A DNA stretch of 64,000 nucleotides from Macrostomum lignano (Eukaryota). The notes beneath the pieces were generated by a model. The model was not told where the DNA came from and did no database searches. It saw only the letters and a list, made by a program, of their open reading frames with translations. The stretch is taken from NCBI GenBank assembly GCA_002269645.1, contig NIVC01000309.1:124001-188000 (forward strand), written 5' to 3'. Shown here piece by piece: positions 29,231 through 64,000 of the stretch. The position numbers were made by a program, and so were the translations under genes. Position 1 is the first letter of the stretch. The number at the start of each line of letters is the position of its first letter.

Positions 29231-29245
29231 CAGTCATAACCTCAC

Positions 29246-29612: not shown

Positions 29613-29737
29613 TCTGCAGGGCCGAGGGATTGGGTGAGGGAAATCAAGGGAAATTATCCCGTGTGTGCATGGGTTAAACTGTTCCTTTGTTTTATCGGCA
29701 ACCTTTATTGGATGATAATGTAAATCAACTTTGTCTA

Positions 29738-30245
29738 ACAGGAATCGCTCCTGTCTAACAGGAATCACTCCTGTCTAACAGGAATCACTCCTGTCTAACA
29801 GGAATCACTCCTGTCTAACAGGAATCACTCCTGTCTAACAGGAATTACTCCTGTCTAACAGGAATCACTCCTGTCTAACAGGGATCGCTGTTGTCTAACA
29901 GTAATCGCTAATGTCTAATAGGAATCGCTAATGTCTAACAGGAATCGCTAATGTCTAACAGGAATCGCTAATGTCTAATAGGAATCGCTAATGTCTAACA
30001 GAAATCGCTAATGTCTAATAGGAATCGCTAATGTCTAACAGGAATCGCTAATGTCTAACAGGAATCGCTAATGTCTAATAGGAATCGCTAATGTCTAACA
30101 GGAGTCGCTAATGTCTAACAGGAATCGCTAATGTCTAACAGGAATCGCTAATGTCTAACAGGAATCGCTAATGTCTAACAGGAATCGCTAATGTCTAACA
30201 GGTATCACTCATGTCCAACAGGAAATGTCCTCTTCAAACAGGAAT
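29738..30245. repeat. 20-bp satellite array 1 (GTCTAACAGGAATCACTCCT / ..CGCTAAT)
   Basis: Directly visible. Confidence 0.95.
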
Positions 30246-40562: not shown

Positions 40563-40593
<31 letters not shown>

Positions 40594-40614
40594 TAGTGTC
40601 TGTCTGTGTGTCTT

Positions 40615-40675
<61 letters not shown>

Positions 40676-40706
40676 GTCGGTCTGTCTGTCTGTCTGCCTG
40701 TCTGAC

Positions 40707-40777
<71 letters not shown>

Positions 40778-40778
40778 G

Positions 40779-40810
<32 letters not shown>

Positions 40811-43800
40811 AATCAATCTACCTACCTATCTATCTATCTATCTATCTATCTACCTATCTATCTGTCTATCTATATATCTATTCCAGAATACTACACGTGG
40901 CAGAACCCGGCCGCCAATTCCGGATTCACATTCTGCCAGTACCCGTTCATCCTGAGCATTCAGGCCAAGCGCAGCATACTGCAGCGGGACAGCGAGACCC
41001 AGATGATCATTATGGCCAAGCGCAGCCTAGTGGCCGGCGTGGCGAAGCGCAACCAGCCCAGCATGGACATGCTGTTTCTAAACATCACAGTCAGGCGCAG
41101 CCATCTAGTAGCGGATTCAATGCGCCAGATATCCGCTAAGCAGAAGGATTTAAAGAAGAAATTGCGCGTCACCTTCGAAGGCGAAGCCGGCTTAGATATG
41201 GGCGGCCTGACCAAGGAATGGTTCCTTCTACTGATCCGCTCCGTGTTTCTGAGCAATAGCGGCCTGTTCACTTACGATGCCAAGTGAGTGCGACCGGAAT
41301 TAGTGATGCTTTTTGCGCCCGAAAGGCCACTCGTCTACTAGCCTAGACGCAAGATTTAGTAGCTAAAAAGCTAAACTGGTCGCTAAACTTGTCGCTAAAC
41401 TGGTAGCTAAACTGGTTGCTAAACTTTTTGCTAAACTGGTTGCTAAACTGTCGTAGCTAAACTTGTTGCTAAACTTGTCGCTAAACTGGTAGCTAAACTG
41501 GTCGCCGGCTGTTTCTAAACATCACAGTCAGGCGCAGCCATCTAGTAGCGGATTCAATGCGCCAGATATCCGCCAAACAGAAGGATTTAAAGAAGAAATT
41601 GCGCGTCACCTTCGAAGGCGAAGCCGGCTTAGATATGGGCGACCATGGCAACAGCCCACAGATACTATAATAATTATAGTTATTATAGTATCTGTGCAAC
41701 GGCCTGAAAATTACCAGTTTAGCGACCAGTTTAGCAACCAGTTTAGCGACCAGTTTAGCAACCAGTTTAGCGACTAGTTTAGCAACCAGTTTAGCGACCA
41801 GTTTAGCAACCAGTTTAGCGACCAGTTTAGCAACCAGTTTAGCGACTAGTTTAGCGACTAGTTTATCGACAAGTTTAGCGACAAGTTTAGCGACAAGTTT
41901 AGCGACAAGTTTAGCTACCAGTTTAGCTACCAGTTTAGCGACCAGTTTAGCTACCAGTTTAGCAACCAGTTTAGCGACCACTTTAGCTACCACTTTAGCT
42001 ACCAGTTTAGCAACAAGTTTAGCTAGCAGTTTAGCAACAAGTTTAGCGACCAGTGTAGCAACCAGTTTAGCGACCAGTTTAGCTACCAGTTTAGTTACCA
42101 GTTTAGCGATAAGTTTAGCGACAAGTTTAGCTACCAGTCTACAACCAGTTTAGCTACCAGTTTAGTAACCAGTTTAGCAACCAGTTTAGCGACCAGTTTA
42201 GCTACCACTTTAGCTACCAGTTTAGCAACAAGTTTAGCTAGCAGTTTAGCAACAAGTTTAGCAACCAGTTTAGCGACCAGTGTAGCAACCAGTTTAGCGA
42301 CCAGTTTAGCTACCAGTTTAGTTACCAGTTTAGCGATAAGTTTAGCGACAAGTTTAGCGACCAGTTTAGCGACCAGTTTAGCAACCAGTTGAGCTACCAC
42401 TTTAGCTACCAGTTTAGCAACCAGTTTAGCGACCAGTTTAGCAACCAGTTTACCGACCAGTTTAGCTACCACTTTAGCTTCCAGTTTAGCAACCAGTTTA
42501 GCGACCAGTTTAGCTACCACTTTAGCTACCACTTTAGCTACCAGTTTAGCGACCAGTTTAGCTACCACTTTAGCTACCACTTTAGCTACAAGTTTAGCAA
42601 CCAGTTTACCGAGCCCTAATTATTGAAAACACGCCGTCCTGCCAACAGGTCTCGTTGCTACTGGTTCAGCCTGGCGCCGAAGGACAACCAGCAAGAATAC
42701 TATCTGATTGGCGCACTGATGGGCCTAGCAGTGTACAATAGCATCAATTTAGACGTTCGCTTTCCATCTATCTGTTATCGCAAGCTGCTCAGTCCGAGTG
42801 TTGTGCCATCGACTACTGGCACCACTCAGCTGGGCGTCTGTCCGGTCACCCTGACCGACCTGCGTGAGGTCATGCCGGAGCTGGCACACGGCCTGTACGA
42901 GTTGCTGCGTCACCAGGGCGACGTGGCCGAAGATTTTGGCGCCACATTCGAGATTGCTTACACCGATGGAGCCGGCAAGAATCGGACAGTTGAACTAAAA
43001 CCGGACGGTCGGTCTATCTCGGTGACCAATGCCAATAGGCAGGAGTACGTTGCTATGTACTGCGACTACCTGTTGAATAAAGGTGTTTATAGCAAATTCC
43101 GCAGCTTCTATCTGGGCTTTCATCAGGTGTGCGCCAGTAATGCGCTGATTCTGCTGCGACCTGAGGAGGTGTGAGCTCGTCTGTTGTTAACTATTCAACA
43201 GTGAGAGTAGATCTAGAGTGCAGTTTCAAGAGTAGATCTAGAGGCAGATACGAGAGTAGATCTAGAGGCAGATACGAGAGTAGATCTAGAGGCAGATACG
43301 AGAGTAGATCTAGAGGCAGATACGAGAGTAGATCGAGAGGCAGATACGAGAGTAGATCTAGAGGCAGATACGAGAGTAGATCTAGAGGCAGACACGAGGG
43401 TAGATCTAGAGGCAGATACGAGAGTAGATCTAGAGGCAGATACGAGAGTAGATCTAGAGACAGATACGAGGTAGATCTAGAGGCAGACACGAGAGTAGAT
43501 CTGGAGGCAGATACGAGAGTAGATCTGGACGCAGACACGAGAGTAGATCTGGACGCAGATACGAGAGTAGATCTAGAGGCAGATGCGAAAGTAGATCTAG
43601 AGGCAGATACAAGAGTAGATCTGGAGGCATATACACGAGTAGATCTAGAGGCAGATACAAGAGTAGATCTGGAGGCAGACACGAGAGTAGATCTACAGGC
43701 AGACACGAGAGTAGATCTACAGGCAGACACGAGAGTAGATCTAGAGGCAGATGCAAAAGTAGATCTATTGGCAGATATGACAGATATGATATATCGTATA

Positions 43801-44185
43801 TCCATCTATAATATCATGTCCGCAGGTTGAACACCTGGTTTGCGGCTCGCCAAAATTCGATTTCAACGAGCTACGCAAGGTGACAGTGTACGACGGCTAC
43901 AGGCCCAACGACGCGCAGGTGAAATGGTTCTGGGACATTGCCATCAATATGGAACCTGCTAAGCAGGCCGCCCTGCTGCTCTTCATCACTGGCAGCGATC
44001 GGATCCCGGTTGGCGGCATGGCCGAGATGCAAATGAAAATTGTTCGAGTCAATCGCCTAGAAATGCTGCCGATTGCGCACACCTGCTTCAATCAGATCAT
44101 GCTGCCTACCTATAAGACCAAGGCTACACTCACTGAGAGACTGCTGCTGGCCATTGACAACTCGGAAGGGTTTGGGCTTGAGTGA
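38435..44185 (+). CDS. HECTD2: HECT E3 ubiquitin ligase HECTD2-like; exons 38435-39186, 39788-40356, 40887-41283, 42649-43168, 43826-44185
   Basis: Phase-consistent junctions (2,1,2,0). Motifs [39 protein letters not shown], catalytic AHTCFN and C-terminal NSEGFGLE. Confidence 0.9.
39295..39735. repeat. Degenerate GGCGCTAAATT/AGTCTC tandem repeat in HECTD2 intron 1
   Basis: Directly visible; the core resembles the GCGGCGCTAAA units of the MITE at 8080. Confidence 0.85.
40357..40880. repeat. (TCTG)n/(TCTA)n microsatellite filling HECTD2 intron 2
   Basis: Directly visible. Confidence 0.97.
41360..42610. repeat. 12-bp satellite in two inverted arrays (GCTAAACTGGTN at about 41360-41505; ACCAGTTTAGCN at about 41713-42610)
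   Basis: The arrays are reverse complements of each other and enclose a duplicated exon fragment. Confidence 0.93.
41508..41707 (+). pseudogene. Intronic duplicate of part of HECTD2 exon 3 (copy of 41071-41203) plus a 60-bp hairpin-containing insert
   Basis: 133 bp match with two substitutions; no upstream AG acceptor. Confidence 0.92.
43203..43770. repeat. 24-bp tandem repeat (GAGAGTAGATCTAGAGGCAGATAC) in HECTD2 intron 4
   Basis: 8-aa periodic ORFs; self-complementary AGATCT/TCTAGA core. Confidence 0.95.
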
Positions 44186-44379
44186 CATGACATACAGTTT
44201 AGAGATAGGTGTATTGCTGGCACAAACTTAACTTATTAGCTACAGCGCTGGCCCCACGGATTTCAAATACCCGTTTTCGTCATTCGTTGCTTTCTTATAT
44301 TATTAAGGAGCTAAATGAGTACTCCCGTCTCTGCTGGGCTCGTGTGGGACAGAGCAAGATTTTCTTAATAGGGAATTAG

Positions 44380-44501
44380 ATAGACAGACTGACTGACTAA
44401 CTGACAGACACTAAGACAGACAGACACTAAGCCATTAAGATAGACAGACGGACAGACAGACAGACACACAGACAGACACACAGACAGACACTAAGCCATT
44501 A

Positions 44502-44538
<37 letters not shown>

Positions 44539-44655
44539 AACAGACACTAAGACAGACACACAGACAGAAAGACAGACAGACACTAAGCCATTAAGATAGA
44601 CAGACGGACAGACAGACAGACAGACACACAGACACAGACAGAGACAGACAGACAG

Positions 44656-44700
<45 letters not shown>

Positions 44701-44805
44701 GACTAAGACACACACAGACAGACAGACAGACAGACAGACACTAAGCCATTAAGATAGACAGACGGACAGACAGACAGACTAAGACACACACAGACAGACA
44801 GACAT
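44380..44805. repeat. (GACA)n microsatellite with interspersed CTAAGCCATTAAGATA units
   Basis: Directly visible. Confidence 0.93.
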
Positions 44806-45619
44806 GCCCTTAAACGCGCTCTGAAGGCTAACTTATACATTGTACAAGTTTGTATTTCAGATAGAAAGTAAAGTACTTCATTCTTATGGATTTCTTGTAT
44901 CCATGTTATGTATTTCTATATTTGCGCACTATTAACCTCCCTGCAAGCTTAGTGTACAGTCAGACAGGGAACGCGAGCGGTTGATTCTGTTTTCTCTTTT
45001 AACTGTCACTTTGTTGTTTACCTCTCTTTGCTTTTAGGCTATTTCTTGTTGTATACATTTTACAGATTATATCCATTCCACGTAGTTGCTTGCGTTTTGC
45101 ATATTTTCACTATTCTCAGCTCTGTCACGGAGTAACTGGTGTGTCTTTCCTATCCACGTAAAAATTCAAACTTCTGCAATACATTCGCCCGTGTTTTTAG
45201 TTTTTTTTATCGAAAATCCAATTGAGGCGAGTAAAGATTTTGTTTCTTGTTAATTATACACTCTGATCTTTGTTGTACTATTGTCAAATGTAGTCTTTGT
45301 CTTGTTTTATTCTAGTCTTTGTGATATTTGACTTGGCTTGAATTGAGGACTTTAGTGTTTTCAAGTGCCTTTAATGTTTATATGTATTTTTTTAAACTTC
45401 AATTGGCTTCACGCTTTTGGCTCTTTTTCTGTATTCTATACTACGAGTACACATACAATAAATACATTCGTTAATATTAAATTCATATTTAATGCCTTTA
45501 GATTTTTCCTTATTATTTATTATATTTTAGCCCGCATAGCCTCCATCTGTCATCGGGTCCTTTAAAACTTACAATGGAATGGCAATCCGGCCCGCTTAAG
45601 GTTTATTCTCAGTTCTCTT

Positions 45620-46290
45620 ACCTCCTCTCTCCTATATTCTCTCTCTCTCTCTTCTCTCCTGTCCCCCTTCTCTCTTCTCTGCCACTTCTCTTCGCTCCTC
45701 TCTCCACCTTTTCTTTTCACTCTCCCCCTTTTCTACTTTTCTCTCCCCCATCTCTCTTCTCTCTCCCCCATCTCTCTTCTCTCTCCCCCATCTCTCTTCT
45801 CTCTCCCCCATCTCTCTTCTCTCTCCCCCATCTCTCTTCTCTCTCCTCCATCTCTCTTCTCTCTCCCCCATCTCTCTTCTCTCTCCCCCATCTCTCTTCT
45901 CTCTCCCCCATCTCTCTTCTCTCTCCCCCATCTCTCTTCTCTCTCCCCCATCTCTCTTCTCTCTCCCCCATCTCTCTTCTCTCTCCCCCATCTCTCTTCT
46001 CCCTCCCCCTTCTCTCCCCTCCTCTCTACCCCTTTTTCTTTTCTCTCTCCCTTTTCTCCTCTCTCCCTTTTTCTCTTCTCTCCCCCCTTCTCTCCTCTTC
46101 TCTATCCCCTCCCTCCCTCTTCTCTCTTCTTCCTTCTCTCTTCTCCCTCCCCCTTCTCTCCTCTACTCTCTCCTCTCTTCTCTCCCATTTCTCTCTTCTC
46201 TCCTGTCACCCCTTCTCTATCTCTCTCTCCTCTCCATCCTCCCATCCTCTCCTCTCCTCTCTCCCATCCTCTCTTCTCTTCCCTATTCCC
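45620..46290. repeat. Pyrimidine-rich 20-bp repeat (CTCTCCCCCATCTCTCTTCT)
   Basis: Directly visible. Confidence 0.93.
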
Positions 46291-49064: not shown

Positions 49065-49589
49065 ATGTCTGGCGACAGCAGCGCAGCACCAATCCCGCCG
49101 GCTGTAATGTGGGCCCAGCGCAAGGACAAACTGTACGTCACCATCTGTCTGGAGGATGTGCAGAATAAAAAGCTGGAGCTCACCGACAAGCAGCTAATAT
49201 TTAGCGGCGTCGGCGGTACAGACAGGAAGCCGCACGCTGTCACTATCGACTTTCACAAGGAGGTGAACCCTGACGACAGCAAGCAGCTGGTCACCGACAG
49301 GGAGATTGTCATGTGCATCAAGAAGAAAGAGTCCGGGCATTATTGGCCTCGGCTGCTGTCCGATTCCACTAAGCGGCACTGGCTGAAAACCGACTTCAAT
49401 CGCTGGCTGGACGAAGACGATTCAGATGACGACATGGCTGCCAGGGAAAACAACCTGGAGGAGATGATGGCCAGGATGGGCTCGGGATTCGGCGGAGGGG
49501 ACGACGGACTGCCGTTGCCAGGCGACGATATAGGCGCGGACGAGCCGGATCAGGATAGCGACGATGAGGACCTGCCGGATCTGGAGTGA
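49065..49589 (+). CDS. PTGES3: Hsp90 co-chaperone p23 / prostaglandin E synthase 3 homolog, single ORF
   Basis: WAQR..LYVTI, WPRL, WLKTDFNRWLDEDDSD and an acidic tail. Confidence 0.93.
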   Translation: MSGDSSAAPIPPAVMWAQRKDKLYVTICLEDVQNKKLELTDKQLIFSGVGGTDRKPHAVTIDFHKEVNPDDSKQLVTDREIVMCIKKKESGHYWPRLLSDSTKRHWLKTDFNRWLDEDDSDDDMAARENNLEEMMARMGSGFGGGDDGLPLPGDDIGADEPDQDSDDEDLPDLE

Positions 49590-50576
49590 TTCTCTCCAGT
49601 AGAAGTCTTGGCGCCTGACAAAGGAGAGGAGAGATTGGGGGGTGGGGAAACTGAAATTCAGTTTAATATTAAAAGGTCTTAATGAGCAACAGATTGAAAG
49701 TAAACTTCTTATTCAATGGATCAACACTTGTTCATAAATATTTGAACCCCTAATCTCTTTAACCACGTGAATTGCTAACTCCTGGTGAATTTAACTGTGT
49801 TTTCATATTCCAACCAGCAGCATTGTTTGAACAAAAATACGTGTTTTAAATTGCAAAATGACCTATTCATAGTGCTTTTTGTAAGCTTTTAAATTTCTCT
49901 TATAATAATATCAATAGAAATTACTTGCTCACCGCCTATACGACGCACCAGACCTTAACAGTGTTGGCCTTTTCCTGCGTTTTGTAAGTTTATAACCGAC
50001 AACTTGATGTTTTGCTGCGGCAATTTCGTTAGAAAATAATAACTCTACATTTATTTGGTTAGCTGCCATGGTCTCCAACTCTCCTTATGTCAGGCGTCTC
50101 CAGTGCTGTCTCTAATTACTATACTTTTTTAGAATACGTTTTTGTACCATTTCTCTGTTTCATTTTCTCACAGTGTCCATCTTAAAGTTGAGCAGGTCCA
50201 GAAGAAGATCAGTTTGTTCTAGGTTAAACGGAATTCCATGTGTTAAACTTGAGCACTAGTGTAAGTTCCGCCTGATGCCTCTCCGGTTAAGTTATATTTA
50301 CCTTCTATATTGTCAGTACGGATGAATCACCTTCATAATAATATTCACCTTGACTACAATGCTAACATCTAGTGTCATGTATACTCCAGCATAAGATTAT
50401 TTTAGTGAATATCCAGCCACATTGGTTTACATTAAGCCATAGTTTAAAATGGGAGTTTAAAAAAAGAAAAAGCTGAAAGCTTTGATTTCCTTGCTGTTGG
50501 ATAAAGATTCTCTTCGTTGTTTATTAATTTGTTTTTTGTTTAAATCGTAGCTTTAATTGTACGAGTAGTTAGCAAA

Positions 50577-51988
50577 TCAGAGTTCTTGCTCATCCCAGGA
50601 CCATCCCGTCCGCTTGGATATATGAGCACCAACTGCTGCTGGTTGAAACTTCTTTGGCTGCAATGCCGCATACCGCCAATTGTCAGTCTGCATCTCCGGC
50701 AGAGGTTGCTGCTTTTGAAGCTCACCAGCTCTAGCTGTGTTGTCTTGTTTGCCTGATGCTAATCTTGGCTGCCAATGATTTACACCGTCGAGTTTCTGGT
50801 CCTTGCTAGCTGATGCTTGAATCCCAGCTGGTAGTTGGTCAGGTGTTGCTTGTCGCTGATACAGAGGCGACTGTACTGGTTCTGGCTGACTCCAGTGATG
50901 CGACCTGTAGATGAATTGGTATAGGTGTCTTGTTTACTCTTGGAATGGCTCAACATTTCTTCTTTTGGATCCAACTTTCACTATAACCATTCTTCACGCA
51001 AATGATGTTAAAAAATTAAATCTTAACGACCTTGCTGCATTCTGGCGTCTTTAAAACATCCTGTATGTGGATATTACAAACGTATAATAAGGAAATCGTT
51101 TGAAAAGATAGTAACTTTGAGTTCCTACTTTTAACAGGTTTGAATTTTGAAGCTGTGAAAGCGACTGTTTGGCATCAAGCAAATAAATAAAGCAATATGA
51201 TCTTCCTATGTAGGAGTCCCTCGTTCCAAGATTGATTATAAAACTTCTGCATAGAAATACAATCTTGTATACAAAGCCTGCCAGCATACTTTGATGATGA
51301 CTCCTGTTGTAATTTGAGTTGTTCAAGTTGCTCGCCCAGACGACGAACGCTGTCCTCCATACGTTTGAGACTTCTCGATACTGCGCGCTCTTTTGTTCTC
51401 CAGCCTTCGTCATCAGTTAGTTGATCTAAGTTGACGCGCTGAGTAGAGTGGTCGATTGGCACAAGTGACACCGTAGCCCGGTGATGTTGCGTCTGGTACT
51501 GCTGGCCATTTCCTTCGTACGTGTAGCCTCCGCCTGTTTGAGCTAGCCTCTTGAGTCGATTGGCTAGATTTATCTGAGCACAGCAACGACAGCCAGAGCT
51601 GCTCATAGTGTAGCTTGTGTTTTGATGTCGCTTCTGCTGCTTATTCTTCTGCGGCTGAAGATATTCGGATATCAGTTTGTTAACTCGATCGTTTTCCATT
51701 ATTGCTGAATTGGATCTGTGGCTATGCTCCGGTGTCAGGCGTTCCGTAGTACTGATTGGCTGAAAGATAGGGGTCGTGCATCGTACATAGTTGCGCACAA
51801 GTCGTAGCATGATTTCCAAATATTCTTACCTTTGTTAATTCGCCCTTGTTTTCACTTGTATCGGTAACGATTTGGCTTATACTATCTAGCCTTTCGATCG
51901 TCTCTTCCAAGCCTTTGGCTTTATCTATCGCTCGTCGCTCCGACTCCTTTAAGCCTATTTCAAACTTGACTGTCTTTTGCATGTCCAT
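50577..51988 (-). CDS. Uncharacterised coiled-coil/Q-rich protein, about 318 aa; exons 51988-51830, 51759-51290, 50904-50577 (possible extra upstream exon near 52210-52065)
   Basis: Phase-consistent GT-AG junctions (0,2) give one open frame ending at TGA 50577-50579; no recognisable domain. Confidence 0.6.
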
Positions 51989-52695
51989 TTTAACTGGAAA
52001 GAGATTGCTATCGAAGATAAGGTCGATTGCTCTATTAAAAGTTTGCTATAAGCAGTTTTTGTCACGGCTAACTAGAGCGCGTTCGTCTCTGCTTTGCTGC
52101 TTTGCAAAACTGCTTTGCTGCGTTCGTTGCCTTGTCACTTCTTGCTGTTTATAGCTGTACTGGAAAGTGTCCTTTGTACTTTTCCTTCCTCTGAGCCATT
52201 CATCCATCCAGTTCCATGCTTTACAGGGAACAACCAAAGTGCAGTGCAGTACTTCCATCGCTGCACGTGTTTGTATTGACTAGCTTTTTAACACGGAAAT
52301 TGACTTCCGGTTTTACTCTTCTAGAAAGGCTTGTCTATATCCCCATATGTACCTTCTCTGCACATGCATTTAGCCCATATTTGCTCTTATTGTGCAAACT
52401 AGAAATATGGGTAACTAGCTTGAAAACTAGCACGACTTGCAGAGTCAGGTTCGTGTTTATTAATGGAAGTAAATAGGACTGCGATTCTGGTTATTTTGTT
52501 TAAACTGTTTGCACTAGGTTTAGCATTTTCCACTCACCCATTTTCCCCATAGTAGCTACGCAGTTTACTTGTGTCTAGACAAAACTTTTCGTCATTTTCA
52601 CATGAATGCATGCTATAAATTCTTTGAGGCCTACTGTGAGTAGCCAGATCTAGAAAAAAAACACCGATTTTTATACAAAATAAAATCAATAAAAA

Positions 52696-53166
52696 ATGTC
52701 GCAGCCAAGTTCAGCGGTCATTGTGGAAGGCGAGGCGCCAGAATCGGACGATGAAGAGCAGCAGCTGACTGACTCGCCATCCTCCGATGTCAGTTCAAAG
52801 AAATCGACTGCTCCAACTGTTGCAAAAGAGGCCATAGCAACAGAGCACGGGGCGCAGTCTCGGCTGCAGCAGCAGCAGCAGCAAAAGACTAGCCAGCAGG
52901 AGCAGCAGCGTCGCTACGCTAGCAGCGCGTTGCACGCCAGATTTTTTCAAGACGCCGGCAAACTGCAATCCGCGCTGGTTGCTAGGCGAGCGTCAACCTA
53001 CGAGGCGGCTACTAAAGAGCTGCGCGGAGTTGCTAGCCAATTAGCTAAGACGCACGCGTGCATTCAGGATGCCTCGCATGCGCTGCGGCTGACTACTAAT
53101 GATCTGTACAAGCTTGACGACCGGCTGCAAGCCCTGACTAAGACTGACTGGCTGGCTGGCTTGTGA
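52696..53166 (+). CDS. BLOC1S3: BLOC-1 complex subunit 3-like
   Basis: N-terminal VIVEGEAPESDDE plus a C-terminal coiled coil (LRGVASQLAKTHACIQDASHALRLTTNDL). Confidence 0.72.
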   Translation: MSQPSSAVIVEGEAPESDDEEQQLTDSPSSDVSSKKSTAPTVAKEAIATEHGAQSRLQQQQQQKTSQQEQQRRYASSALHARFFQDAGKLQSALVARRASTYEAATKELRGVASQLAKTHACIQDASHALRLTTNDLYKLDDRLQALTKTDWLAGL

Positions 53167-53509
53167 ACGGCTATATTAAACTGATAGTTTTCACACTTTG
53201 CTACAAATTACTCGCAAAACTTTCACTAACTCACTCGTTAGATCATACATTGTTCAGTCGGTTTTTTAGTGCTTTCCAATACTATATGTGTACTATATGT
53301 AAACTTTATGGTTTTTGATAGATTGTCTGTCTCGTTAAAGTATATGATTATCTTTTGTATATAATTCAACCTATTTATGATTTTCAATATCTAAAAACTG
53401 AAATTAGAAAGTGTTCGATTTGATTTTAAGAAAATTTCAGGAGGATCCTATAATTCATGGAGGCTATAATTAATCCTAGCAATAATTAGACTGAGGAATA
53501 GATCAGCTA

Positions 53510-53830
53510 CCCAACAACAGACTAGGGGATAGAGCGACTCCCTAGCAATAAACTGAGGGATAGAGAGGCCCCCTTTACAACAGACTGAGAGATAGAGAGG
53601 CCCCCTCTACAACAGACTGAGGGATAGAGAGGCCCCCTCTACAACAGACTGAGGGATAGAGAGGCCCCCTCTACAACAGACTGGGGGTAGAGAGGCCCCT
53701 CTAGAACAGGCTGGGGGATAGAGGCCCCTCTACAACAGACTGGGGGGTAGAGAGGCCCCTCAACAACAGACTGGGGGGTAGAGAGACCCCCTCAACAACA
53801 GGCTGGGGATAGAGCGGCTACCCAACAACA
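53510..53830. repeat. Tandem repeat of about 30 bp (GAGGCCCCCTCTACAACAGACTGAGGGATAGA)
   Basis: Directly visible between BLOC1S3 and COQ2. Confidence 0.9.
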
Positions 53831-53882
53831 TATTTTCAAGTTATTGAAATTGCAACTTCATTAACCCCATGGATTTCTTCAG

Positions 53883-56800
53883 TTGTCCAAAGCCACAGCT
53901 CGATTTGGTAGCAGCCTTGCCGCCACCGCGCGCTCAGTTGCTGGTCATAGGCTGAGTACCAACTGCTTATTGTTGAGTCAGTCATTTTCGCCGGCGCTTT
54001 GTAGGCGATGGGTAGCAACGGAGCCGGCAATTTTCTCGTCCACCGCAGCGTCAGTTTACACGGTTGCTAGGCGACAGAAACACACAGATTTGCGCCCGCC
54101 AAAGCCAACAATTGCTTATCGACTAGTGGCCTCAGCGCCAGCCGGTCTGCAACCTTACCTGAGACTGGCTCGATTAGATAGGCCTATTGGCACCTGGCTA
54201 TTGTACCTGCCTTGCGCTTGGAGCATCACCTTGGCAACTCCAGCTGGCCTGCTGCCAGATCCGCTTGTGCTGGGCCTATTCGGCTGCGGCGCCCTGCTGA
54301 TGCGAGGCGCCGGCTGTACTATGAATGACATTTTAGATAGGTGAGCCGGACAGAGAGTAGGGGAGGGAGAAGAAAAAGGAGATGAGAGATGAGAGGCGAG
54401 ATGAGAGGAGGGAGGAGAGGAGAAAAGAAAGGAGAGAGAGAGATGGGAGGAGAGGGGATAGGAGAGAAGAAAGGAGATGAATGGGATGAGAGAAGAAAAG
54501 AGAGGAAAAGAGAGAGATGAGAGGAGAAGGGAGAGAGGGGAGAGAGAAGAGAGAGAGATAGAGCTGTGAAGAGAAGCGGGATTAGTATTGGGAAGTTTCA
54601 AGAACCCAAAAGGGTTGCATAGTGAGGCTTTGCGGCCGCATGCTGTAACATTGCTGCTATTAGTATTGGCCAGTGCTGAACAACTAAGGTTGGGACACTT
54701 AACCAAAGCAGGCTACTAATAGTATTGAAAATTGAATGTCTCTCCTACTCAGGGATTATGACAAGCGCGTAGAACGCACCGAGGACCGGCCGATACCTTC
54801 AGGCCAGGTGACTGTGCCCCGAGCTACAGCTTTCCTAATTGGCCAATCGCTGCTGGCCGCTTGCGTTCTGTTTCAATTCGACTGGTTCACCGTTGGTTTG
54901 GGCGTCGCTTCGCTCGGCTTAGTTGCCACTTATCCGCTGTTTAAACGGTTCACTTATTGGCCTCAGGCGGCGTTGGGTATGCCTTATTTATCGGTTTCAT
55001 TTCTTCTTAATTATCTTCTAATTTATAAAAGAAAGCCCTGGCACTATTGAAAAGTCGCTGCTAGTAAGCAACTTCCCTCGGATCTCCCTTGCAACTTGCT
55101 CGACTCTGCGTAACCAGAAAATAGAATGAATCAAATGAGGTTTTACCATAGACTCAGGGGTCGACAAACTTTTTTCCTTTAAGTGCCAGATAAAGAATCT
55201 TGACCATTACTGTGGGCCAGATGAGAAAGAAAATGAATGGATAGAGAGAGAAGAGAAAAAAGAAAATGAGAGATGCGATGAGAGAAGAGGAGAGGAGAGA
55301 GATGAGACGAGAGAGGAGAGGAGTAGAGAAAAGAGAGGAGGGGAGAGAGGACTGAGAAGAAAAACAAACTTTGAGCGGGCCAGATTGCTATTTTGAAGTT
55401 TCAGAGGACCGAGGGCGGGCCAGAGTTTGCCGTCCCCCTGCCATAGACAACAGACCATTGCACTACTGCGGTATGGAGTGAGGATCGTTCTTAGTTAGAT
55501 AAAGAGGCAAGGGACTGTGTACACCCTGACATTGTCACACAACCGGCGTGAGGCTTTGCTGCTCCTTCCGCCGACTCCCCTGAGCAGGCACACAAGCGCG
55601 CGGATACGTACGCAGTCACACGCACAGGCACACACTCAGACAGGAGTGTACAGCGGCCCCTAACTTTATTTATCATTAGGCATGTACACTTCACTGTGCC
55701 TTGGGGTTGGCCCTCAAGGGCGTTAATTGGACGATCAGAGCCAAGCCGAGACTTCAATTTAGCCCAGAAAAATTAATGTAACTGCACTTGGAATCGAGCC
55801 TGGGCCGCTGACACGTCAGAGCGCCGCGCTAGACCACTGGGTAGATCAAGGAAACAAAAAAATAGCAAGGCCTGTCATTAACTAAAGTTCACTAAATAGT
55901 TGAACTTCTGCTGCTGTAGTGCGATGAAACCTCACTGCTAGGTGTCTATCTAGTACTTATCCAAAAAACTTACCTTGCGCGTCACAGGAGTTACACTCAA
56001 CTTCGGCATTCTGATTGGTTACTCAGCTATTCAAGCTCACTGTGATTGGCCAGTAGTGTTGCCACTGTACGGAGCGGCTATCCTGTGGACTATGATTTAT
56101 GACACAATCTATTCGCATCAAGTATGAATTTATAATATTGTACACAATACTTAACAACCTTATCTACGAGTGCCTCTGTTGTGTGCGTTTTTTTCTAGAG
56201 TTATTTTAACTCCCAATAGAACACCTACAGTTGCGTTTAGCTCCTAGCTGCATAGCAACTAGATTTAGTTATTTTTGTATCCTGTTGTTTAACACTGTCA
56301 AGCCAGTTACCATGGACCATTGTGGGACACTTTTTGTTTCTTAGGAAACTTTTCAAGGCTGTGTTCTATATTCCATACAAGTTGATTCTCATATCGTTGG
56401 ATTTTCTGCCAAACTTTGCAAACGGAGAAGCAAAAAAAACTATAAATATTCTGCACAGTCTACTATTGTGGTGAAGGTTTCAATAGATAAGCATCGCATT
56501 TTAATGATATAATATATAATTGTCGATAGGTTGTAGCCTAACGGTTAGAGTGTCGAACTCATTACTGAAAAGTCCGGGGTTCGATTCTCAACCCACTCGG
56601 AACAATTTGTGTCCTTTAGCAAGACACTTAACTCTGCATTGCTTCAGTTCACCCAACTGTAAAATGGGTGCCAGCATTAGCTGGGGTAATTGAGGGTGTG
56701 TGTGCCGACCCCCCCCTCCCCCCAGTCCTTGGACTGGACAGCCTTATTACCAAAAGCTCCTGTGTGTTATATCTTTGAAGAATCTTTTTCAAGCATTTCT

Positions 56801-59397
56801 GGAACAACAAACCTCTAAGAAGTTTTCTAAGAAAATGTAGTGCCCACTCTGTACTTCTACTTGCAGTAGTTCTTAAAATGCTTGCGCGCCGCTGTCTGCC
56901 GTGTGTTTACTTATCTTGACGCACATAAACTTTAGGATTGCTAAATACCTACTTACAGTAATCAACAAATTAGTTGTCTTGCATTTTGAAATTGTTTTGT
57001 AAACATCTCTATAAAATATGACTGATATTCCTACTTAGTAGTAGCAAAAAGTATTTTACTAGTTTTTCTTCGCTTTTCTGTGGCGCTCCAGCTCCCAGTT
57101 CTGTCACCTGTTGTGTGGAGCGATCAGGCTTTCATATTCTATTTGGATAGCTTTTATCTGGATATCACAGTGAGCTGAGTAGCCTCAAATCTCTGAAATG
57201 AGCTTGAGAATTAACTATAATAATGGAACTGCATTTATTCACAGTATCGTTCGACATAAACATGTTGTTTTATTAAAGAACATTTTCAACTCTTTCACAG
57301 GCTTCACATTTAACTATGGGGCTCTGCTAGGCTATGCAGCACTAACTGGCACTATCGACTTGTCCGTTTGCCTGCCCCTGTATGCTGCCGGCTTTTGCTG
57401 GACAATGGTCTATGACACCATCTATGCTCACCAGGTGACCGAACTGGGAACTGGGAGAGATTTCTACTTTATCCAGTTATTGTTTTATATTATTCTAATC
57501 ATTTTATGTTATCTTATATTTTACAAAGTATATCAAATTAAAAGCTTCACTTTTTGTATTCTCTACTTAGAGTAGGCTATTTAGCTTTTGAAACATTTCG
57601 CCAAATAATCAATATAGGAATGTGATTGGCACTATGCTTGTGTATTAAGTTACACTAATTGTTGTTAAACGAGGGTGGGAAGCCGGTGGCAACCCGCGGA
57701 TCAGCCCTGAATTGGGCTCTGCCGCTGAGGGGCACTTCCCGAGATACCCACATGGTTGGGCCCCGACGTCTAGGCCAGGGGAATTTTGGAGCTACTAACC
57801 CAAGCCTATGGCACAAGACACCGCCAACCCAAAAGTGGAATCAGGGACGGTGCTAGGACCGAGTCCACCCAGGCCACCCACCCAGCAGACAAGTCCTCGG
57901 GAGTTCACGAAAAACAGAATTGGAAATGAAAAAGCTTAGTATACTACTGAAAGCCGTCCAAGAGCGGGGAAACCCAGAAGTCTTGGAATAGGGCTTAACT
58001 ATTGGAGCGAGTCTGGAAGGCTTGTATCCGAGGGCGAGTCTCCCATCAGGCAGGATATTGCGACTACCTATGGGGCTGCAAGCCCAAGGGTATCACCTAT
58101 CCAGCTCAATATTGGAGGCCAGGCCAAGGGATCGGGAAGGGGCACAAGGAGCAAGAGGACCCGGACTCAGCCGGTATCCCCGGTTCGGGACGAACATCCT
58201 TCCCAGGACACCAATCCACTGTCAGGATGAGAGCCAGAGACACTTAGGCAGGGAGACAACCAGAGGAGCCAGCAGTTGGACCAAGGACAGAGCAGGATGG
58301 ACCGGGCAGGGAGGGCAGAGCTCATAACTCCAGATATTGGATGGCTTCGAGGCCTAAAATTAAGATAAAACCAATAAAACTGGGGATAAAAACAATGGGA
58401 GGAGCACCCGAACAGCACCCTGCAGCCTACCCCCCCCCCCATAGCCTGCAGCCCGGGGCTCAGCCTCAGGGCTCAGCCTCAGGGCTGGCATCAACTGGGC
58501 TCTACCGTACACCTTCGTGAATGGTCATTCTTTCCTGCAGGGCGGGTACGACCGGGGGGCTCAAGTCCCGTTCTAGCCACACTGCAGTCCAGAGTACACA
58601 CTCACTCCAGGTACACCCCCCCTAAACCAAGGCCGAGGGCCGAAATAATTGGAGAGAAAAGTAGGGTTATTTTTAGAATGGGCACAGCCCCTCCGGGGCG
58701 GACCCTTTGAAAATTGGGCTAGCCGAAGCCAGGCCAATCGGATTGCGCACAACCCTTAGACAAGCTACCAGAGAGGCAACCAGGGTAGAAACAGTCAGAG
58801 AGTTACACTAATTACGAAGAAATATTGTCAATGCGTTTATTTATTGTTTTATTGTTATTTGCAGCTGTTTAATTATTATTTATCACCAGGCTTTGTTGCG
58901 CATGGGTGTCTCGAAACGCACGTTTTTAACGCCTTTTTTAAAACCAAAAATGCTTATTTCGCTTTTCATCACCTTACTAACAGTAGTTTTAACTACCGAA
59001 ATAGTTTGTACTTTAATTGATTGTGCTATGTAAATTGTAGGACAAGGAGGACGATCTCATGGTTGGCGTTAAGTCTACCGCTTTGCTGTTTGGCGACGCG
59101 ACAAAATCCTGGCTGACCGGCTTCACTCTGGGCATGTCGCTGCTTCTGGCCACGGCTGGCGCCAACGCAAACTGCGGCCTGTTTTATCACGCCGGCGCGT
59201 TGTACGCCTCGCTGCACCTTGCCCAGCAGGTGGCCAGCGTTCAGTTGGACAATCCGGCCGACTGCTTGGCCAAGTTCAAGTCCAATAGGAATCTGGGATT
59301 GGCCTTCTGGCTGGCTATCGTGCTGGACAACTTCTTTGGCCTGCCCGTGCCCGGCTTTGGGGGCGGCTTTGAGGAGTCTCTGTTTGCTGATGACTGA
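53883..59397 (+). CDS. COQ2: 4-hydroxybenzoate polyprenyltransferase COQ2; exons 53883-54340, 54753-54976, either 55988-56121 or 57301-57434, then 59041-59397
   Basis: [64 protein letters not shown](S/A)HQDKEDD..GVKSTA; junction phases 2,1,0. Confidence 0.95.
55154..55440. mobile_element. hAT-type MITE with a GA-rich interior
   Basis: Imperfect TIRs TCAGGGGTCGACAAACT / AGTTTGCCGTCCCCCTG. 8-bp TSD CCATAGAC at 55146-55153 and 55441-55448. Confidence 0.82.
55488..55850 (-). mobile_element. Longest SINE family A copy: tRNA-like head, body and short CTAA tail
   Basis: On the minus strand: A-box-like ACCCAGTGGTCTAG, B-box-like GGCTCGATTCC, body shared with 13440-13623, ending TCTAACTAA. Confidence 0.7.
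55988..56121 (+). CDS. COQ2: COQ2 mutually exclusive exon 3, rhodoquinone-type (GVTLNFG...YDTIYSHQ)
   Basis: Acceptor TCACAG, donor CAA|GTATGA, 134 nt, open in the required phase. Missed by the ORF track. Confidence 0.88.
56529..56760 (+). mobile_element. CORE-type tRNA SINE
   Basis: A box TAGCCTAACGG and B box GGTTCGATTC, then GTGTCCTTTAGCAAGACACTTAAC...CTGTAAAATGGG matching the MIR CORE consensus pattern. Confidence 0.82.
57301..57434 (+). CDS. COQ2: COQ2 mutually exclusive exon 3, ubiquinone-type (GFTFNYG...YDTIYAHQ)
   Basis: Acceptor TTTCACAG, donor CAG|GTGACC, 134 nt, same phases as the other exon 3. Confidence 0.9.
57661..58800. mobile_element. 1140-bp GC-rich non-coding insertion with 13-bp TSD (probable retroelement derivative)
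   Basis: AGTTACACTAATT at 57648-57660 and 58801-58813; no TIRs and no credible ORF. Confidence 0.7.
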
Positions 59398-59749
59398 CTG
59401 TGTCTGTCTGTATTTTCAAGGCTTTCGCTAGACCGAGTTTTGTTATAGCTTAGACTTCATGGCTCTTATCAAATTTTGAGCTTTTTAGCATTTCGATTCT
59501 ATGTTTGGTAATGTAGTTGCGACTATGTTGTGTGAGTTTTATCCTCGTATGAATGTACAATACTGTTAAAGCAAACGTGTTGATTTTGGATGTACCATCA
59601 CATGGTTAAATGCATCTTTTATATCGCTTTTTTAAGCAAAGTTAATGTTAGATTTTAGACGAAAAAATTTCAGCTGTAGCTAAAAAGATTTAGTAGTCGT
59701 TTTCAATCTTCTTTTTATTTACGAGCGTACATGCTTCTTTATCTATTGG

Positions 59750-60140
59750 CGCACCCACCTCACTCCACCACTGCCCCGTGGGCTGTACATTTGTGCACCC
59801 ACCTCACTCCGCCACTCTATCCCTTTGGCTGTAAAATAGCGCACCCACCTCACTCTGCCACTCTCTACCCTAAGCTGTACATTAGTACACCCACCTCACT
59901 CCGCCACGGCCCCGTTGGCTGTTCATTTGCGCCCCAAATCACTCCCGCCACTCTGTCCCCTAGGCTGTATAATAACGCATCCACCTCACTCCGCCACTCT
60001 GTCTCCTAGGCTGTACATTAGCTTACCCACTCCACTCCGCCACTCTGTCCCCTAGACTGTACATTATTGCATTCACCTCAATCCGCCACTCTGTCCCCTA
60101 GGCTGTACATTAGCTTACCCACCTCACTCTGCCTCTCTCT
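59750..60140. repeat. Degenerate tandem repeat of about 45 bp (CACCTCACTCCGCCACTCTGTCCCCTAGGCTGTACATT..)
   Basis: The same family recurs at 62925-63215 and at the window end. Confidence 0.88.
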
Positions 60141-60476
60141 CCCAGACTTCAGGTTGGTAAGCTCACCCTTTTTGCCTAAGTCGTTTACTTCCTACATTGA
60201 AATCATTTTTTTTACTTTCATGAAAATCACTTCGTTTTTAACAAAATAGTTTTAGCTTGTTCAGGCAAAATTATTGTTTCAAACGAAGCAAACCAGATCA
60301 ATAAAGTTCAGACGCTGTCATGCAACAGCTAGGCAAGGAAACATCTGCTGCTCTTGCTACTACTAGCAGTGCCACCTCGACGGCAACAGCGGCCGCTTCA
60401 TGACTGTTCGATCCAGTGTCAACTCCAGCTGCTAGTCTAACTTAATCGCAGTTTAATAACTGATCGGATTAGCGCG

Positions 60477-63400
60477 ATGACTTCAACACCGCCAATGTCA
60501 ACAGGTGCTAATGTTGCAGATGATTCCAATCCTGTTGAGCGATGGTTTAAAGCCATTGATTGTGCCAGAATGAGCCTCGTCAAGGAAGCTTATCCAGCTA
60601 TTGACAATGTTGACGTCACAAAGGCCTTGCCATTTGGTCCGAAAAATACTCTTGTAAGTGAGGCCTGTATTGGGTTGGGCTTTTTACATCAGCGATAGTA
60701 CAGTCCATAGATGTACTATCGCTCTCTCAGAGAGGCTAAGGTCGCCATGTCAGTTTCGGATTCCAAGGTCATTATGTCTGTATCACAGATCCCAAGGTCA
60801 CCATACCGGATTCACAGATCCCAAGGTCACCAAACCACCAGCTGTGCAGATCCAAAGGTCACTAAATCACCAGTTTCCTAGATCCCAAGGTCACCAGTTT
60901 CACAGGAACCACGAGTGTCACAGGTCTTAAGTCTTTCAAAGCATTAATCTCAGGATAACAATAACTTATCTTACTCTCTTTAATTTTCAGCACAAAGACG
61001 CCACAGCGCTGCATTTGGCGTCCTACATCGGGCACAAAGACATTGTTAGATTTTTGATATCGTCAAAGGCCGATCCTAATGCCTCTACCAGCGTTAGTCT
61101 TTGTTTTCTTTTCTAATAAAACAGCTTTAAAAGTACCTTTCAAGCTCGATTTTAAAAAACGTGCTTTTTTAATAAATCACTATTCAGCTTGGCTACCGAC
61201 CTATACATTTCGCCGCTTCGGAGGGTCACGTGACTACAGTGGATATTTTGCTCAACGCCGGGGCCGAAGTGAGCCCACTCACTGCTGTAAGTTAACAGCC
61301 TTGATAGTAGCTATGCAAGTGTGCATTATTATTTTACCATATACTGTTGTATTGGTCAGTTTAATGGTTAAATTTCGCATTTTCCGGCAATATTTATTAA
61401 ACAGTTACTTGATGCTGTGAGACAGTTATTAGATGCTGTTAGACAGTTATTAGATGCTGTTAGACAGTTATTAGATGCTGTTAGACAGTTATTAGATGCT
61501 GTTAGACAGTTATTAAATCCTGTTAAATAGTTATTAGATGCTGTTAGACAGTTATTAGATACTGTTAGACAGTTATTAGATACTGTTAGACAGTAATTAG
61601 ATACTGTTAGACAGTTATTAGATACTGTTAGACAGTTATTAGATACTGTTAGACAGTAATTAGATGCTGTTAGACAGTTATTAGATACTGTTAGACAGTT
61701 ATTAGATACTGTTAGACAGTAATTAGATGCTGTTAGACAGTTATTAGATACTGTTAGACAGTAATTAGATACTGTTAGACAGTAATTAGATGCTGTTAGA
61801 CAGTTATTAGATACTGTTAGACAGTTATTAGATACTGTTAGACAGTAATTAGATGCTGTTAGACAGTTATTAGATACTGTTAGACAGTAATTAGATACTG
61901 TTAGACAGTAGTTAGATGCTGTTAGACAGTTATTAGATACTGTTAGACAGTTATTAGATACTGTTAGACAGTTATTAGATACTGTTAGACAGTTATTAGA
62001 TACTGTTAGACAGTAATTAGATGCTGTTAGACAGTTATTAGATACTGTTAGACAGTAATTAGATACTGTTAGACAGTAATTAGATACTGTTAGACAGTTA
62101 TTAGATACTGTTAGACAGTTATTAGATACTGTTAGACAGTTATTAGATACTGTTAGACAGGTACTGATTCTCAATACGCATTCACAATAGGACGGCGACA
62201 CTCCGGTCGCGCTCGCCCTGAAGTGGGGAATGCGCGACACAGTTCGCAAACTGCTGAACAGCGGCGCCACTCTGGACGGCCTGGACGATGCGTCGCTAAA
62301 AAAGTACGCTAAGCGCGGCTTCCTGCCGTCTCAAGAAGCCGCTTCGCCAACTCGACAGTCGGCTGCACCGTCGGCTGGCGGAAGAAAAGGCGGCGGCAAT
62401 GTTAGACAGCAGCAGCAGCAGCGGCATCATTATCAAGGTGCTGGCGGCGGTTATTCAATGGGCGATTCGTCCACTCAGCGACGGTGGCGCGAATTGACGT
62501 CGAAATTTGCCGATGCCGAAGTCGGCAGCGGCGGCGGTGCTGATGATAGCCGGTCGGCGGCCTTCACTGCGGTAGCTCGCTGCGTTCGCCGCCTGTTGGC
62601 CGACTGTCGCACCGAGGAGCGACTGGAAGCTCGAGCTGCAACGCTTGCCTCCGCGCTGCGCTCAGCTGGCCCAGATTTGGCCACGGCCGGAGATCTGGCC
62701 GAATTGCTGGAGATGCTGGCCTTCGATTGCGGCTTCCCAGTATCTGGCTCGCTGGCCGATTGCCTGGCCGGACTGCGACTTCGGTGTCGTCGAATAAGAG
62801 AAGGTCCAGGCGCCTGGGCCGTGCGCTTGATGCGTACGGTGCGTACTTTTTGCTGCTGTCGTTTCTCTATAGTATTTTTATCATATATACTGCGTACATG
62901 TATACAGGTGTTTTCTGAACCCACCTTATTCTGCCTGTCTCCTAGACTGTACATTGGCGCACTCACCTCACTCCGCCACTGTATCTCAATAAAATGTCTT
63001 ATTAAGGCACACCCAATCTGCTCTTGTGTTCCCCAACTGTACATAGACTTGACGCGCCCGCCTCACTCCACCTCTCTGTCCCCCTAGATTGTACATTGAC
63101 GCGCCCACCTCACTTCGCCACTCTGTCCCCCTAAACTGTACATTGACGCGCCCACCTCACTTCACCACTCTGTCCCCCTAGATTGTACATTGACGCGCCT
63201 ACTTCACTCCGCCACTCATACATTTTCAGGCGCAGGACCCGTCGCTAGATTCCCATTCCGTAGACGCAAGTCTGTGCCTCTGTAACGCCTTGCTAAGCAT
63301 GGAACAAGCTGAGTGCACCGGCCGTCTGGCTCCCGCTGCTGAAGAATTTATCAATCAAACTCTGTCGGCTCTGGAAGGCACCGAGGAGCCGCGGCACCTG

Positions 63401-63806
63401 GTGCAATTGCTTGCTCTGGTTCGGCTCTCATCAGAATTATTCGAGTCAAATTTTCTAGCCAAATTCGAACAATTCGCCGACGTTCTAATTGGCTGGTCCA
63501 TTGATCCGGGCGATTCCACCGAGTTCGCCCTGTCCAAACGGCTGGCCGCCTGCTTAACCTCGCTAGGTAGATTATGGCGCGCCAACTCTAATTACACCTG
63601 GCAACTGCTTGACAGCCTAGTTGAAGATGTGTCCGTCTTTGTTAATGAAGAATTGCCTTCGGCGCTGGCTAAAGCCACTAGCGGCGGCGGCGGCGCGCGA
63701 GCTGATTCGCCAGTTGAAACGGCTATGGCAGCAGCGCCGCTGCTGGAGACGTTTGCCACGGTGCTGACTGCGCTGGACAATGCTAGCTGTCGGCAGGCTG
63801 ATGATG
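60477..63806 (+). CDS. Ankyrin-repeat / SMG1-like kinase N-terminus, 3'-partial; exons 60477-60653, 60991-61092, 61188-61286, 62191-62838, 63230-63806
   Basis: All junctions are phase 0. Three ankyrin repeats (TALHLASYIGH, RPIHFAASEGH, TPVALALKWGM). Then FEQFADVLIGWSIDP..LWRAN..LLDSLVED, resembling SMG1 FRDTVDILVGWHID..FW..LLGQFLED. Confidence 0.75.
60770..60930. repeat. Short degenerate repeat (CACAGATCCCAAGGTCAC) in an intron
   Basis: Directly visible. Confidence 0.7.
61416..62160. repeat. 21-bp tandem repeat (CTGTTAGACAGTTATTAGATA) filling an intron
   Basis: 7-aa periodicity in ORF 61368-62270. Confidence 0.96.
62925..63215. repeat. Second array of the 45-bp repeat family
   Basis: Same unit as 59750-60140; fills the intron up to the acceptor. 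Confidence 0.88.
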
Positions 63807-63889
63807 GTAAGGCCTTGGGGTTGGCTCCAGAGTGTTAATTTCGTGCGCACTAATCGTGCACTAAAGCTCCAAATTCTAATTTATAATAA

Positions 63890-63960
63890 TGTGGCCGCTC
63901 ACGGAATCGAACCCAGAGATCGTGTCGGGAGGGTCGTTCTTCTAACCAATAGGGTCCCCG
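63890..63960 (-). mobile_element. SINE family A head fragment
   Basis: The minus strand reads GGTTCGATTCCGTGAGCGGCCAC, identical to the copy near 13480. Confidence 0.68.
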
Positions 63961-64000
63961 ACACTTGACTGCGAAACTATGCCCTCCTAGACTGTACATT

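Follow-up and report, generated by a model that had tools for sequence, protein, structure and literature searches.

The coq-2 gene of Caenorhabditis elegans carries two mutually exclusive exons, 6a and 6e, both of 134 nucleotides (nt), and rhodoquinone synthesis in this nematode requires the e-form (Tan et al. 2020, eLife 9:e56376). The a-form is pan-eukaryotic. In all e exons examined in the same study, Phe204 was replaced by Leu and Ala243 by Ser. Here, COQ2 (coq-2) is described from the free-living flatworm Macrostomum lignano. The gene lies in a 64-kb stretch of contig NIVC01000309.1 (positions 124,001 to 188,000), hereafter the window, and all coordinates refer to this stretch unless another sequence is named. 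The gene contains a comparable pair of tandem exons, and a first-pass annotation of the DNA had proposed that they switch the enzyme between ubiquinone and rhodoquinone precursors. Its account of the published coq-2 exon switch was accurate and matches Tan et al. 2020.

The M. lignano locus resembles C. elegans coq-2 6e/6a in having two tandem 134-nt exons with the e exon upstream, and the same protein segment is exchanged. In both animals, the e exon has Leu and Ser, placed 39 residues apart, where the a exon has Phe and Ala. However, C. elegans belongs to another phylum, and within the window each M. lignano isoform is made up of only four coding exons. For C. elegans there is functional proof, i.e., exon deletions, rhodoquinone loss, and cyanide survival, whereas the M. 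lignano pair is known from sequence.

In the 18 species of Supplementary file 3 of Tan et al. 2020, the e exon is upstream of the a exon in all. Three platyhelminths are listed, i.e., Fasciola hepatica, Schistosoma mansoni (Smp_347140), and Schmidtea mediterranea (SMESG000018280), and, like M. lignano, they have exons of 134/134 nt with e before a and with matching phases and borders. M. lignano is not among the 18 species, and it differs from the listed platyhelminths in belonging to Macrostomorpha, a lineage absent from the published list. At the genomic locus of Paragonimus kellicotti, the e exon was found at 6653-6786 and the a exon at 6930-7063. Both are of 134 nt, and their phases and flanking codons are as in M. 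lignano.

In molluscs, the annotated isoform pairs of Aplysia (X1/X2) and Crassostrea virginica (X1/X2) differ in this segment alone, and their e exons have Leu and Ser. The e exons of mollusc and annelid COQ2 genes (Aplysia, Crassostrea, Helobdella, and Alvinella) are of 131 nt (44 amino acids, aa), i.e., one residue shorter than in M. lignano, and some of them break the Leu/Ser rule. Another system is the RquA pathway of bacteria and some protists, of which the end product is likewise rhodoquinone for fumarate reduction. RquA turns ubiquinone directly into rhodoquinone. According to Tan et al. 2020, ubiquinone is the source of bacterial rhodoquinone, whereas in animals COQ2 is diverted to a precursor made from tryptophan.

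Identity and structure of the COQ2 gene

The gene at 53883-59397 on the + strand was assigned as COQ2, a UbiA-family polyprenyltransferase that is embedded in the membrane and acts in quinone biosynthesis. The first-pass annotation had named it so, and the identity is supported by the Pfam UbiA domain (PF01040, 2.8e-55) and by the predicted structure, which has the all-helical membrane fold of UbiA. In protein search, the protein assembled with exon A was 100% identical over the 321-residue query to PAA57658.1, which is recorded as 'hypothetical protein BOX15_Mlig002721g3, partial [Macrostomum lignano]'. The next matches were vertebrate 4-hydroxybenzoate polyprenyltransferases, at approximately 57%. 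Both Asp-rich motifs of the family (NDxxDxxxD and DxxDD) were present, and N136, D137, D140, D144, D261, D264, and D265 were invariant in a full-length alignment of 26 sequences.

The AlphaFold model of COQ2, built from these 26 sequences, had a mean predicted local distance difference test (pLDDT) value of 84.9 and a predicted template modelling score (pTM) of 0.80. By Foldseek, the model was matched to ApUbiA (4OD4/4OD5), AfUbiA, DGGGP synthase, and human UBIAD1, with target-normalised template modelling (TM) scores of 0.69-0.75; that for ApUbiA was approximately 0.75. A solved eukaryotic COQ2 structure was not found by sequence search, which returned archaeal ApUbiA alone.

The coding exons were assigned as follows, where a slash marks the exon border.

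53883..54340, + strand: COQ2 coding exon 1, with a presequence-like N-terminus and the first Asp-rich motif NDILD-R; donor AG/GTGAGC; identified by its open reading frame (ORF) and by tblastn of the assembled protein
54753..54976, + strand: COQ2 coding exon 2, DYDKRVERT...YWPQAAL-G; acceptor CTCAG/G, donor G/GTATGC; ends in phase 1
55988..56121, + strand: alternative exon A, e-type (rhodoquinone-type), 134 nt, 45 aa
57301..57434, + strand: alternative exon B, a-type (ubiquinone-type), 134 nt, 45 aa
59041..59397, + strand: last COQ2 coding exon; acceptor TTGTAG/GAC; opens with the second Asp-rich motif DKEDD; stop codon TGA at 59395-59397

In the model, the swapped segment corresponds to residues 216-260. 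Helix 211-219 ends within it (L219), helix 222-231 lies wholly inside, and helix 236-268 contributes its first 25 residues. An alternative exon supplies a short helix, a complete one, and the initial two-thirds of a long one that leads into the second Asp-rich motif. S258 is placed three residues ahead of D261 of the invariant DKEDD motif. This position of the segment agrees with the published statement that the swap alters two core helices beside the substrates (Tan et al. 2020).

The paired 134-nt exons

The first-pass annotation had placed exon A at 55988-56121 and exon B at 57301-57434, each of exactly 134 nt, and a script check of the sequence returned the same coordinates and lengths. 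Entry in phase 1, exit in phase 0, and open frames in both exons, which had also been claimed, all hold, and both exons have AG/GT borders. TCACAG stands directly before each exon; the bases after exon A are GTATGA, and those after exon B are GTGACC. The end of exon 2 at 54976 carries one base of a Gly codon, and the last exon begins with GAC AAG GAG GAC GAT. With the carried-over G, the peptides read GVTLNFG...IYSHQ for exon A and GFTFNYG...IYAHQ for exon B. The other two frames of both exons contain stops.

The homology of the two exons was borne out, with 76/134 nt (57%) and 25/45 aa identical and a tblastn E value of 1.1e-15. When either exon peptide was searched against the whole window by tblastn, the sole match was the other exon, and the next had E > 0.1. 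The homology is thus not by chance, and there is no third copy. A third alternative exon was therefore rejected, as the two copies stand alone in the 64-kb window.

Inclusion of both exons leads to a stop 10 codons into exon B, as the claim of a frameshift had implied, and skipping of both leads to a stop 11 codons into the last exon. Judged by these frames, exactly one of exons A and B must be spliced in to make the enzyme. Steric exclusion by a short intron was considered for the pair and rejected, because the intron between exons A and B is 1179 nt long, vs 143 nt for the e-a intron of Paragonimus. The absence of exon A from the ORF list, which the first reading had pointed out, fits its ORF at 55975-56127, which is 50 aa long and falls under the 60-aa cut-off. 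Exon B sits in an ORF of 125 aa. The acceptor of exon A has a weak polypyrimidine tract (ACTTACCTTGCGCGTCACAG).

Signature residues of the two exons

The e and a exons of trematode, mollusc, annelid, and nematode genes were aligned together with vertebrate sequences (alignment A1). The sequences were taken from a representative-protein search and named by cluster look-up. They include isoform pairs of Aplysia and Crassostrea, entries of Bradybaena, Soboliphyme, Paragonimus, and Calicophoron, and one flatworm-like protein; the entries of Helobdella and Dirofilaria are read-through models containing both exons. The e-type exons were chosen by eye from approximately 135 of the 150 matches of this search, and exon identities were counted by hand from the tool alignments. 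In a separate protein search with the exon A peptide and short flanks, two a-type fragments and zero e-type relatives were returned.

Exon A has Leu4 and Ser43, which are 39 residues apart as L204/S243 of C. elegans, and exon B has Phe4 and Ala43. In A1, these residues stand in the same columns as those of e-type and a-type exons, respectively, as the first-pass annotation had read them. Phe4 and Ala43 are common to all ten a-type exons of A1. In the 26-sequence alignment, at least 90% of rows have F219 and A258, whereas L219 and S258 stand in the exon-A protein. At F219 and A258, exon B agrees with the consensus of vertebrates and arthropods, and it is 71-73% identical to mollusc a exons (hand count from A1).

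A further column was recognized at exon position 8 (56009-56011 in exon A and 57322-57324 in exon B). In A1, 9/9 e exons have Val or Ile there, with Ile8 in exon A, and 10/10 a exons have Ala, with Ala8 in exon B. In the A1 sample, this position separates the types better than the published Ala/Ser site. A single-exon arthropod-like COQ2 (P0283) has Val8 together with Phe/Ala; Val at position 8 is thus not confined to e exons.

Exon A keeps the COQ2-invariant residues of A1, i.e., N, G, Y, T, YD, Y, and Q. The swapped segment begins with the Gly after WPQxxL and ends with HQ just ahead of DKxDD, and its borders are the same as those of the Paragonimus exons and of the isoform differences in Aplysia and Crassostrea. 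The e-type exon A (55988) lies upstream of the a-type exon B (57301), which is the order of all 18 listed species and of Paragonimus.

Conservation and use of both exons

A paralogous copy of the locus, L001, was found in contig NIVC01002460.1. It is collinear with the window at approximately 93-96% identity. Between the two copies, 454/458 positions of exon 1, 221/224 of exon 2, and 353/357 of the last exon are identical, i.e., 98.7-99.1% for the constitutive exons. Exon A is identical at 134/134 positions and exon B at 133/134. Identity falls to 94.4% and 94.5% in the introns on either side of exon A and to 85-90% in the other introns. The lone change in exon B is synonymous (ACU to ACA, Thr). 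From approximately 3.2% intronic substitutions, approximately 8.7 changes would be expected in exons A and B together, and 1 was observed (Poisson P of approximately 0.002, by our own arithmetic). Because the changes are fewer than expected, both exons are under constraint, and the comparison of the copies shows that purifying selection acts on both of them.

Each exon is also used by itself in a public gene model. Exon A alone is present in PAA57658.1, which comes from the Mlig_3_7 annotation, and this annotation is guided by RNA sequencing (RNA-seq) and was built with StringTie/TACO. Exon B alone is present in UniProt A0A1I8GS08. This entry matches the copy in the window and falls in the same 90% cluster, and it is wrongly fused to the downstream SMG1.

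Proposed function and alternative explanations

It is probable that the e/a exon pair of M. lignano COQ2 switches the enzyme between ubiquinone and rhodoquinone synthesis. With exon B spliced in, the a-form (Phe, Ala) would prenylate 4-hydroxybenzoate, leading to ubiquinone. With exon A spliced in, the e-form (Leu, Ser) would use 3-hydroxyanthranilate, for which this form is needed in C. elegans, leading to rhodoquinone. Rhodoquinone would then act as a low-potential carrier for fumarate reduction when there is no usable oxygen.

The same e exon is present in the free-living planarian S. mediterranea (Tan et al. 2020), in which the rhodoquinone RQ9 was detected by high-performance liquid chromatography. 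Because planarians with the same exon make RQ9, rhodoquinone synthesis, mutual exclusivity of the exons at the transcript level, and control by hypoxia are likely in M. lignano as well. By analogy with work on C. elegans and helminths, the pair may provide a substrate switch and rhodoquinone production, and the choice of exon may depend on oxygen, sulfide, or developmental stage.

The switch mechanism itself is already known, including from three other flatworms, and M. lignano is a new species for it. The a/e exon pair is an accepted genomic marker for the animal rhodoquinone pathway, on which parasitic worms depend for survival under anaerobic conditions and which is an area of drug-target interest. 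Macrostomorpha is an early-branching flatworm lineage. The intact and selectively maintained pair in M. lignano extends the marker to this lineage, which suggests that the switch is older than the split between free-living and parasitic rhabditophoran flatworms. Transgenesis works in M. lignano, and this transparent, regenerating animal could serve as a tractable and safe model for the regulation of exon choice.

Several points weigh against the proposed switch. In A1, the first signature site is not absolute among e exons, as it is Gln in the leech Helobdella and Ser in the nematode Dirofilaria. The second site is Ala in the e exon of the snail Bradybaena and Gly in the one flatworm-like protein, and an annelid study found the A/S site uninformative. 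Over its 45 residues, exon A is approximately 60% identical to the trematode e exon and approximately 56% to a-type exons and exon B (A1, hand count). As overall identity does not separate e from a, the e-type classification of exon A rests on the three columns and the gene architecture. The use of the exons rests on two public gene models, and the one with exon A is from the paralogous copy, not the exact locus. No quinone measurement for M. lignano was found in the searchable literature, in which queries with Macrostomum and rhodoquinone, or with the locus tag Mlig002721, returned nothing relevant.

An independent origin of the pair was considered as well, in which the flatworm e and a exons come from a duplication separate from those of nematodes, molluscs, and annelids, and the signature residues converged. 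This is possible but less likely than not; it would leave the function the same and is compatible with the switch. It is favored by exon positions 11-12 (56018-56023 and 57331-57336), which are Gly-Tyr in both the e and a exons of platyhelminths, M. lignano included, and Gly/Ala-Trp in both exon types of the aligned molluscs, annelid, and nematodes and in the vertebrates. The length of e exons, 134 nt in flatworms vs 131 nt in molluscs and annelids, points in the same direction. Likewise, exon A is overall no closer to foreign e exons than to a exons: with flanks, its identity in A1 is 62% to the Paragonimus e exon, which is the most similar one (27/45 over the exon by hand count), 39-59% to other e exons, and 40-60% to a exons. 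On the other hand, the exon borders, the phases, and the order of e before a are the same in all phyla, and shared residues within a lineage may also have arisen by gene conversion or because the exons co-adapted with the remainder of the protein. The Gly-Tyr common to both flatworm exons could therefore reflect co-adaptation, gene conversion, or independent duplication. Tan et al. 2020 left a single vs multiple origin open and cited mrp-1 as a precedent.

It is unlikely that exon A is spliced in and functional while its isoform does something else. It might use another aromatic substrate, act as a tissue-specific ubiquinone enzyme, or alter regulation, with little or no rhodoquinone made in M. 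lignano. The searchable literature, which holds no quinone data for this animal, leaves room for this explanation, and the signature residues are not strictly tied to the exon type in wider sampling. Archaeal ApUbiA, which is no rhodoquinone enzyme, has Leu and Ser at the aligned positions. Rhodoquinone is now reported in mammals, which have no e exon, so the exon and the product are not one-to-one. However, the e exon co-occurs with rhodoquinone synthesis in every species of Tan et al. and is required for it in C. elegans. The RQ9 of a free-living planarian with the same exon and the fit of exon A to all three diagnostic columns also speak for a rhodoquinone-type enzyme.

It is very improbable that exon A duplicates exon B and is decaying or unused, with its appearance in a gene model an annotation artefact and the exon B form alone made: the weak polypyrimidine tract at its acceptor would fit such decay, but its frame is intact, its AG/GT borders are canonical, its length is exactly 134 nt, it has 0/134 nt substitutions between the paralogs where the flanking introns differ by approximately 5.5%, it retains the COQ2-invariant residues, and the model with exon A comes from an RNA-seq-guided assembly.

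Candidate RNA helix at the exon B donor

In Drosophila Dscam, mutually exclusive exons are controlled by competing RNA structures of the docking/selector type. The M. lignano COQ2 gene likewise has a long intronic element complementary to a site at an alternative exon.

57088..57113, + strand: inverted repeat arm 1, candidate regulatory element in the intron between exons A and B, complementary to the 5' splice-site region of exon B
57429..57454, + strand: inverted repeat arm 2, spanning the exon B donor between 57434 and 57435 (CAG/GTGACC)

Among the inverted repeats of the 4-kb alternative region, that of the two arms is the strongest, with 26 nt at 88% complementarity, a perfect core of 17 nt, and a duplex energy of -41.8 kcal/mol. 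When a 401-nt segment with all of exon B inside was folded, the helix closed both the minimum free energy and the centroid structure (z -3.5), and 0/100 shuffles were as good. In the paralogous copy, the same helix appears in the folds (z -3.2). The donor of exon B, GTGAC, deviates at +5 from the species consensus GT[G/A]AG.

From these folds, the element at 57088-57113 is a possible splice-site-masking switch. In this candidate mechanism, the long-range helix would bury the 5' splice site of exon B and loop out the exon, and exon A would be joined to the last exon to give the e-form. When the helix is melted or blocked, the ubiquinone form would be back. That exon choice is set in this way is put forward tentatively and regarded as rather doubtful. 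Between the window and the near-identical paralog there was no covariation by which to judge the helix, and a matching element was not evident on reading the 143-nt e-a intron of Paragonimus; both weigh against it. The pairing also differs from the Dscam type, as one pairing was found and no docking site with several selectors, as it would mask a 5' splice site, and as it is kept only between two near-identical paralogs.

A published regulator of the coq-2 splicing choice was not found in the searchable literature. If the helix does act in this way, it would be the first cis-acting mechanism proposed there for the COQ2 quinone switch, and the animal allows tests with transgenic minigenes.

5' end, introns, and neighboring genes

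Exon 1 contains no in-frame ATG ahead of the catalytic core, either in the window copy or in the paralog (9947-10042 of L001). The COQ2 reading frame opens just past a TAA at 53862-53864. The N-terminus is rich in Arg, Ser, and Ala and is of low confidence in the model, and both public proteins (PAA57658.1 and A0A1I8GS08) are 5'-partial. The M. lignano spliced leader is described to end in ATG, with the acceptor motif [T/C]TNCAG, and one candidate site was found.

53877..53882, + strand: candidate spliced-leader trans-splice acceptor CTTCAG, abutting exon 1, such that the terminal AUG of the leader would be in frame

The sequence CTTCAG/TTG, with its border between 53882 and 53883, fits the acceptor motif in frame. 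Supply of the COQ2 start codon by the spliced leader was thus considered. It fits the window copy and is not asserted here, because the acceptor AG is TG (CTG) in the paralog.

The last COQ2 intron, downstream of exon B, contains an insertion.

57661..58800, + strand: GC-rich insertion of 1140 bp, absent from the paralogous copy (alignment gap)

The insertion is flanked by a 13-bp direct duplication, AGTTACACTAATT, at 57648-57660 and 58801-58813. By these features it is probably a transposable element, which looks recent, i.e., inserted after the genome duplication, and is probably no part of the switch.

By eye, tRNA-like segments of the short interspersed element (SINE) type were seen at 55790-55850 and 56529-56600, with a GGTTCGATTC-type box; they lie in opposite orientation, one in each intron next to exon A. 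Neither ARAGORN nor Rfam gave any call within COQ2 or near it, these segments included, and the repeat finder gave no complementarity for them. GA-rich tracts are present in the COQ2 introns at 54352-54558 and 55268-55351.

At 49065-64000 on the + strand, a CS-domain p23-like gene, BLOC1S3, COQ2, and an SMG1-like kinase stand in a row on the same strand. This row and the COQ2-SMG1 fusion in UniProt are consistent with the polycistronic transcription units described for M. lignano.

On the - strand, a single ORF of 527 aa was found at 16314-17897. It encodes a PR/SET domain (PF21549, 1.3e-34) and, after it, an array of C2H2 zinc fingers, i.e., a PRDM9-like architecture. An 84-bp tandem repeat at 16340-16751 (4.9 copies, 93% matches) codes for the array. 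Long minisatellite arrays, with periods of 11-47 nt, are unusually frequent in the window and are located at 716-4999, 11129-11906, 25270-32451, 40362-46170, 53514-53818, 59745-60143, and 61397-62160. Examples are the 36 copies of a 21-mer at 61397-62160 and approximately 38 copies of a 31-mer at 3228-4412.

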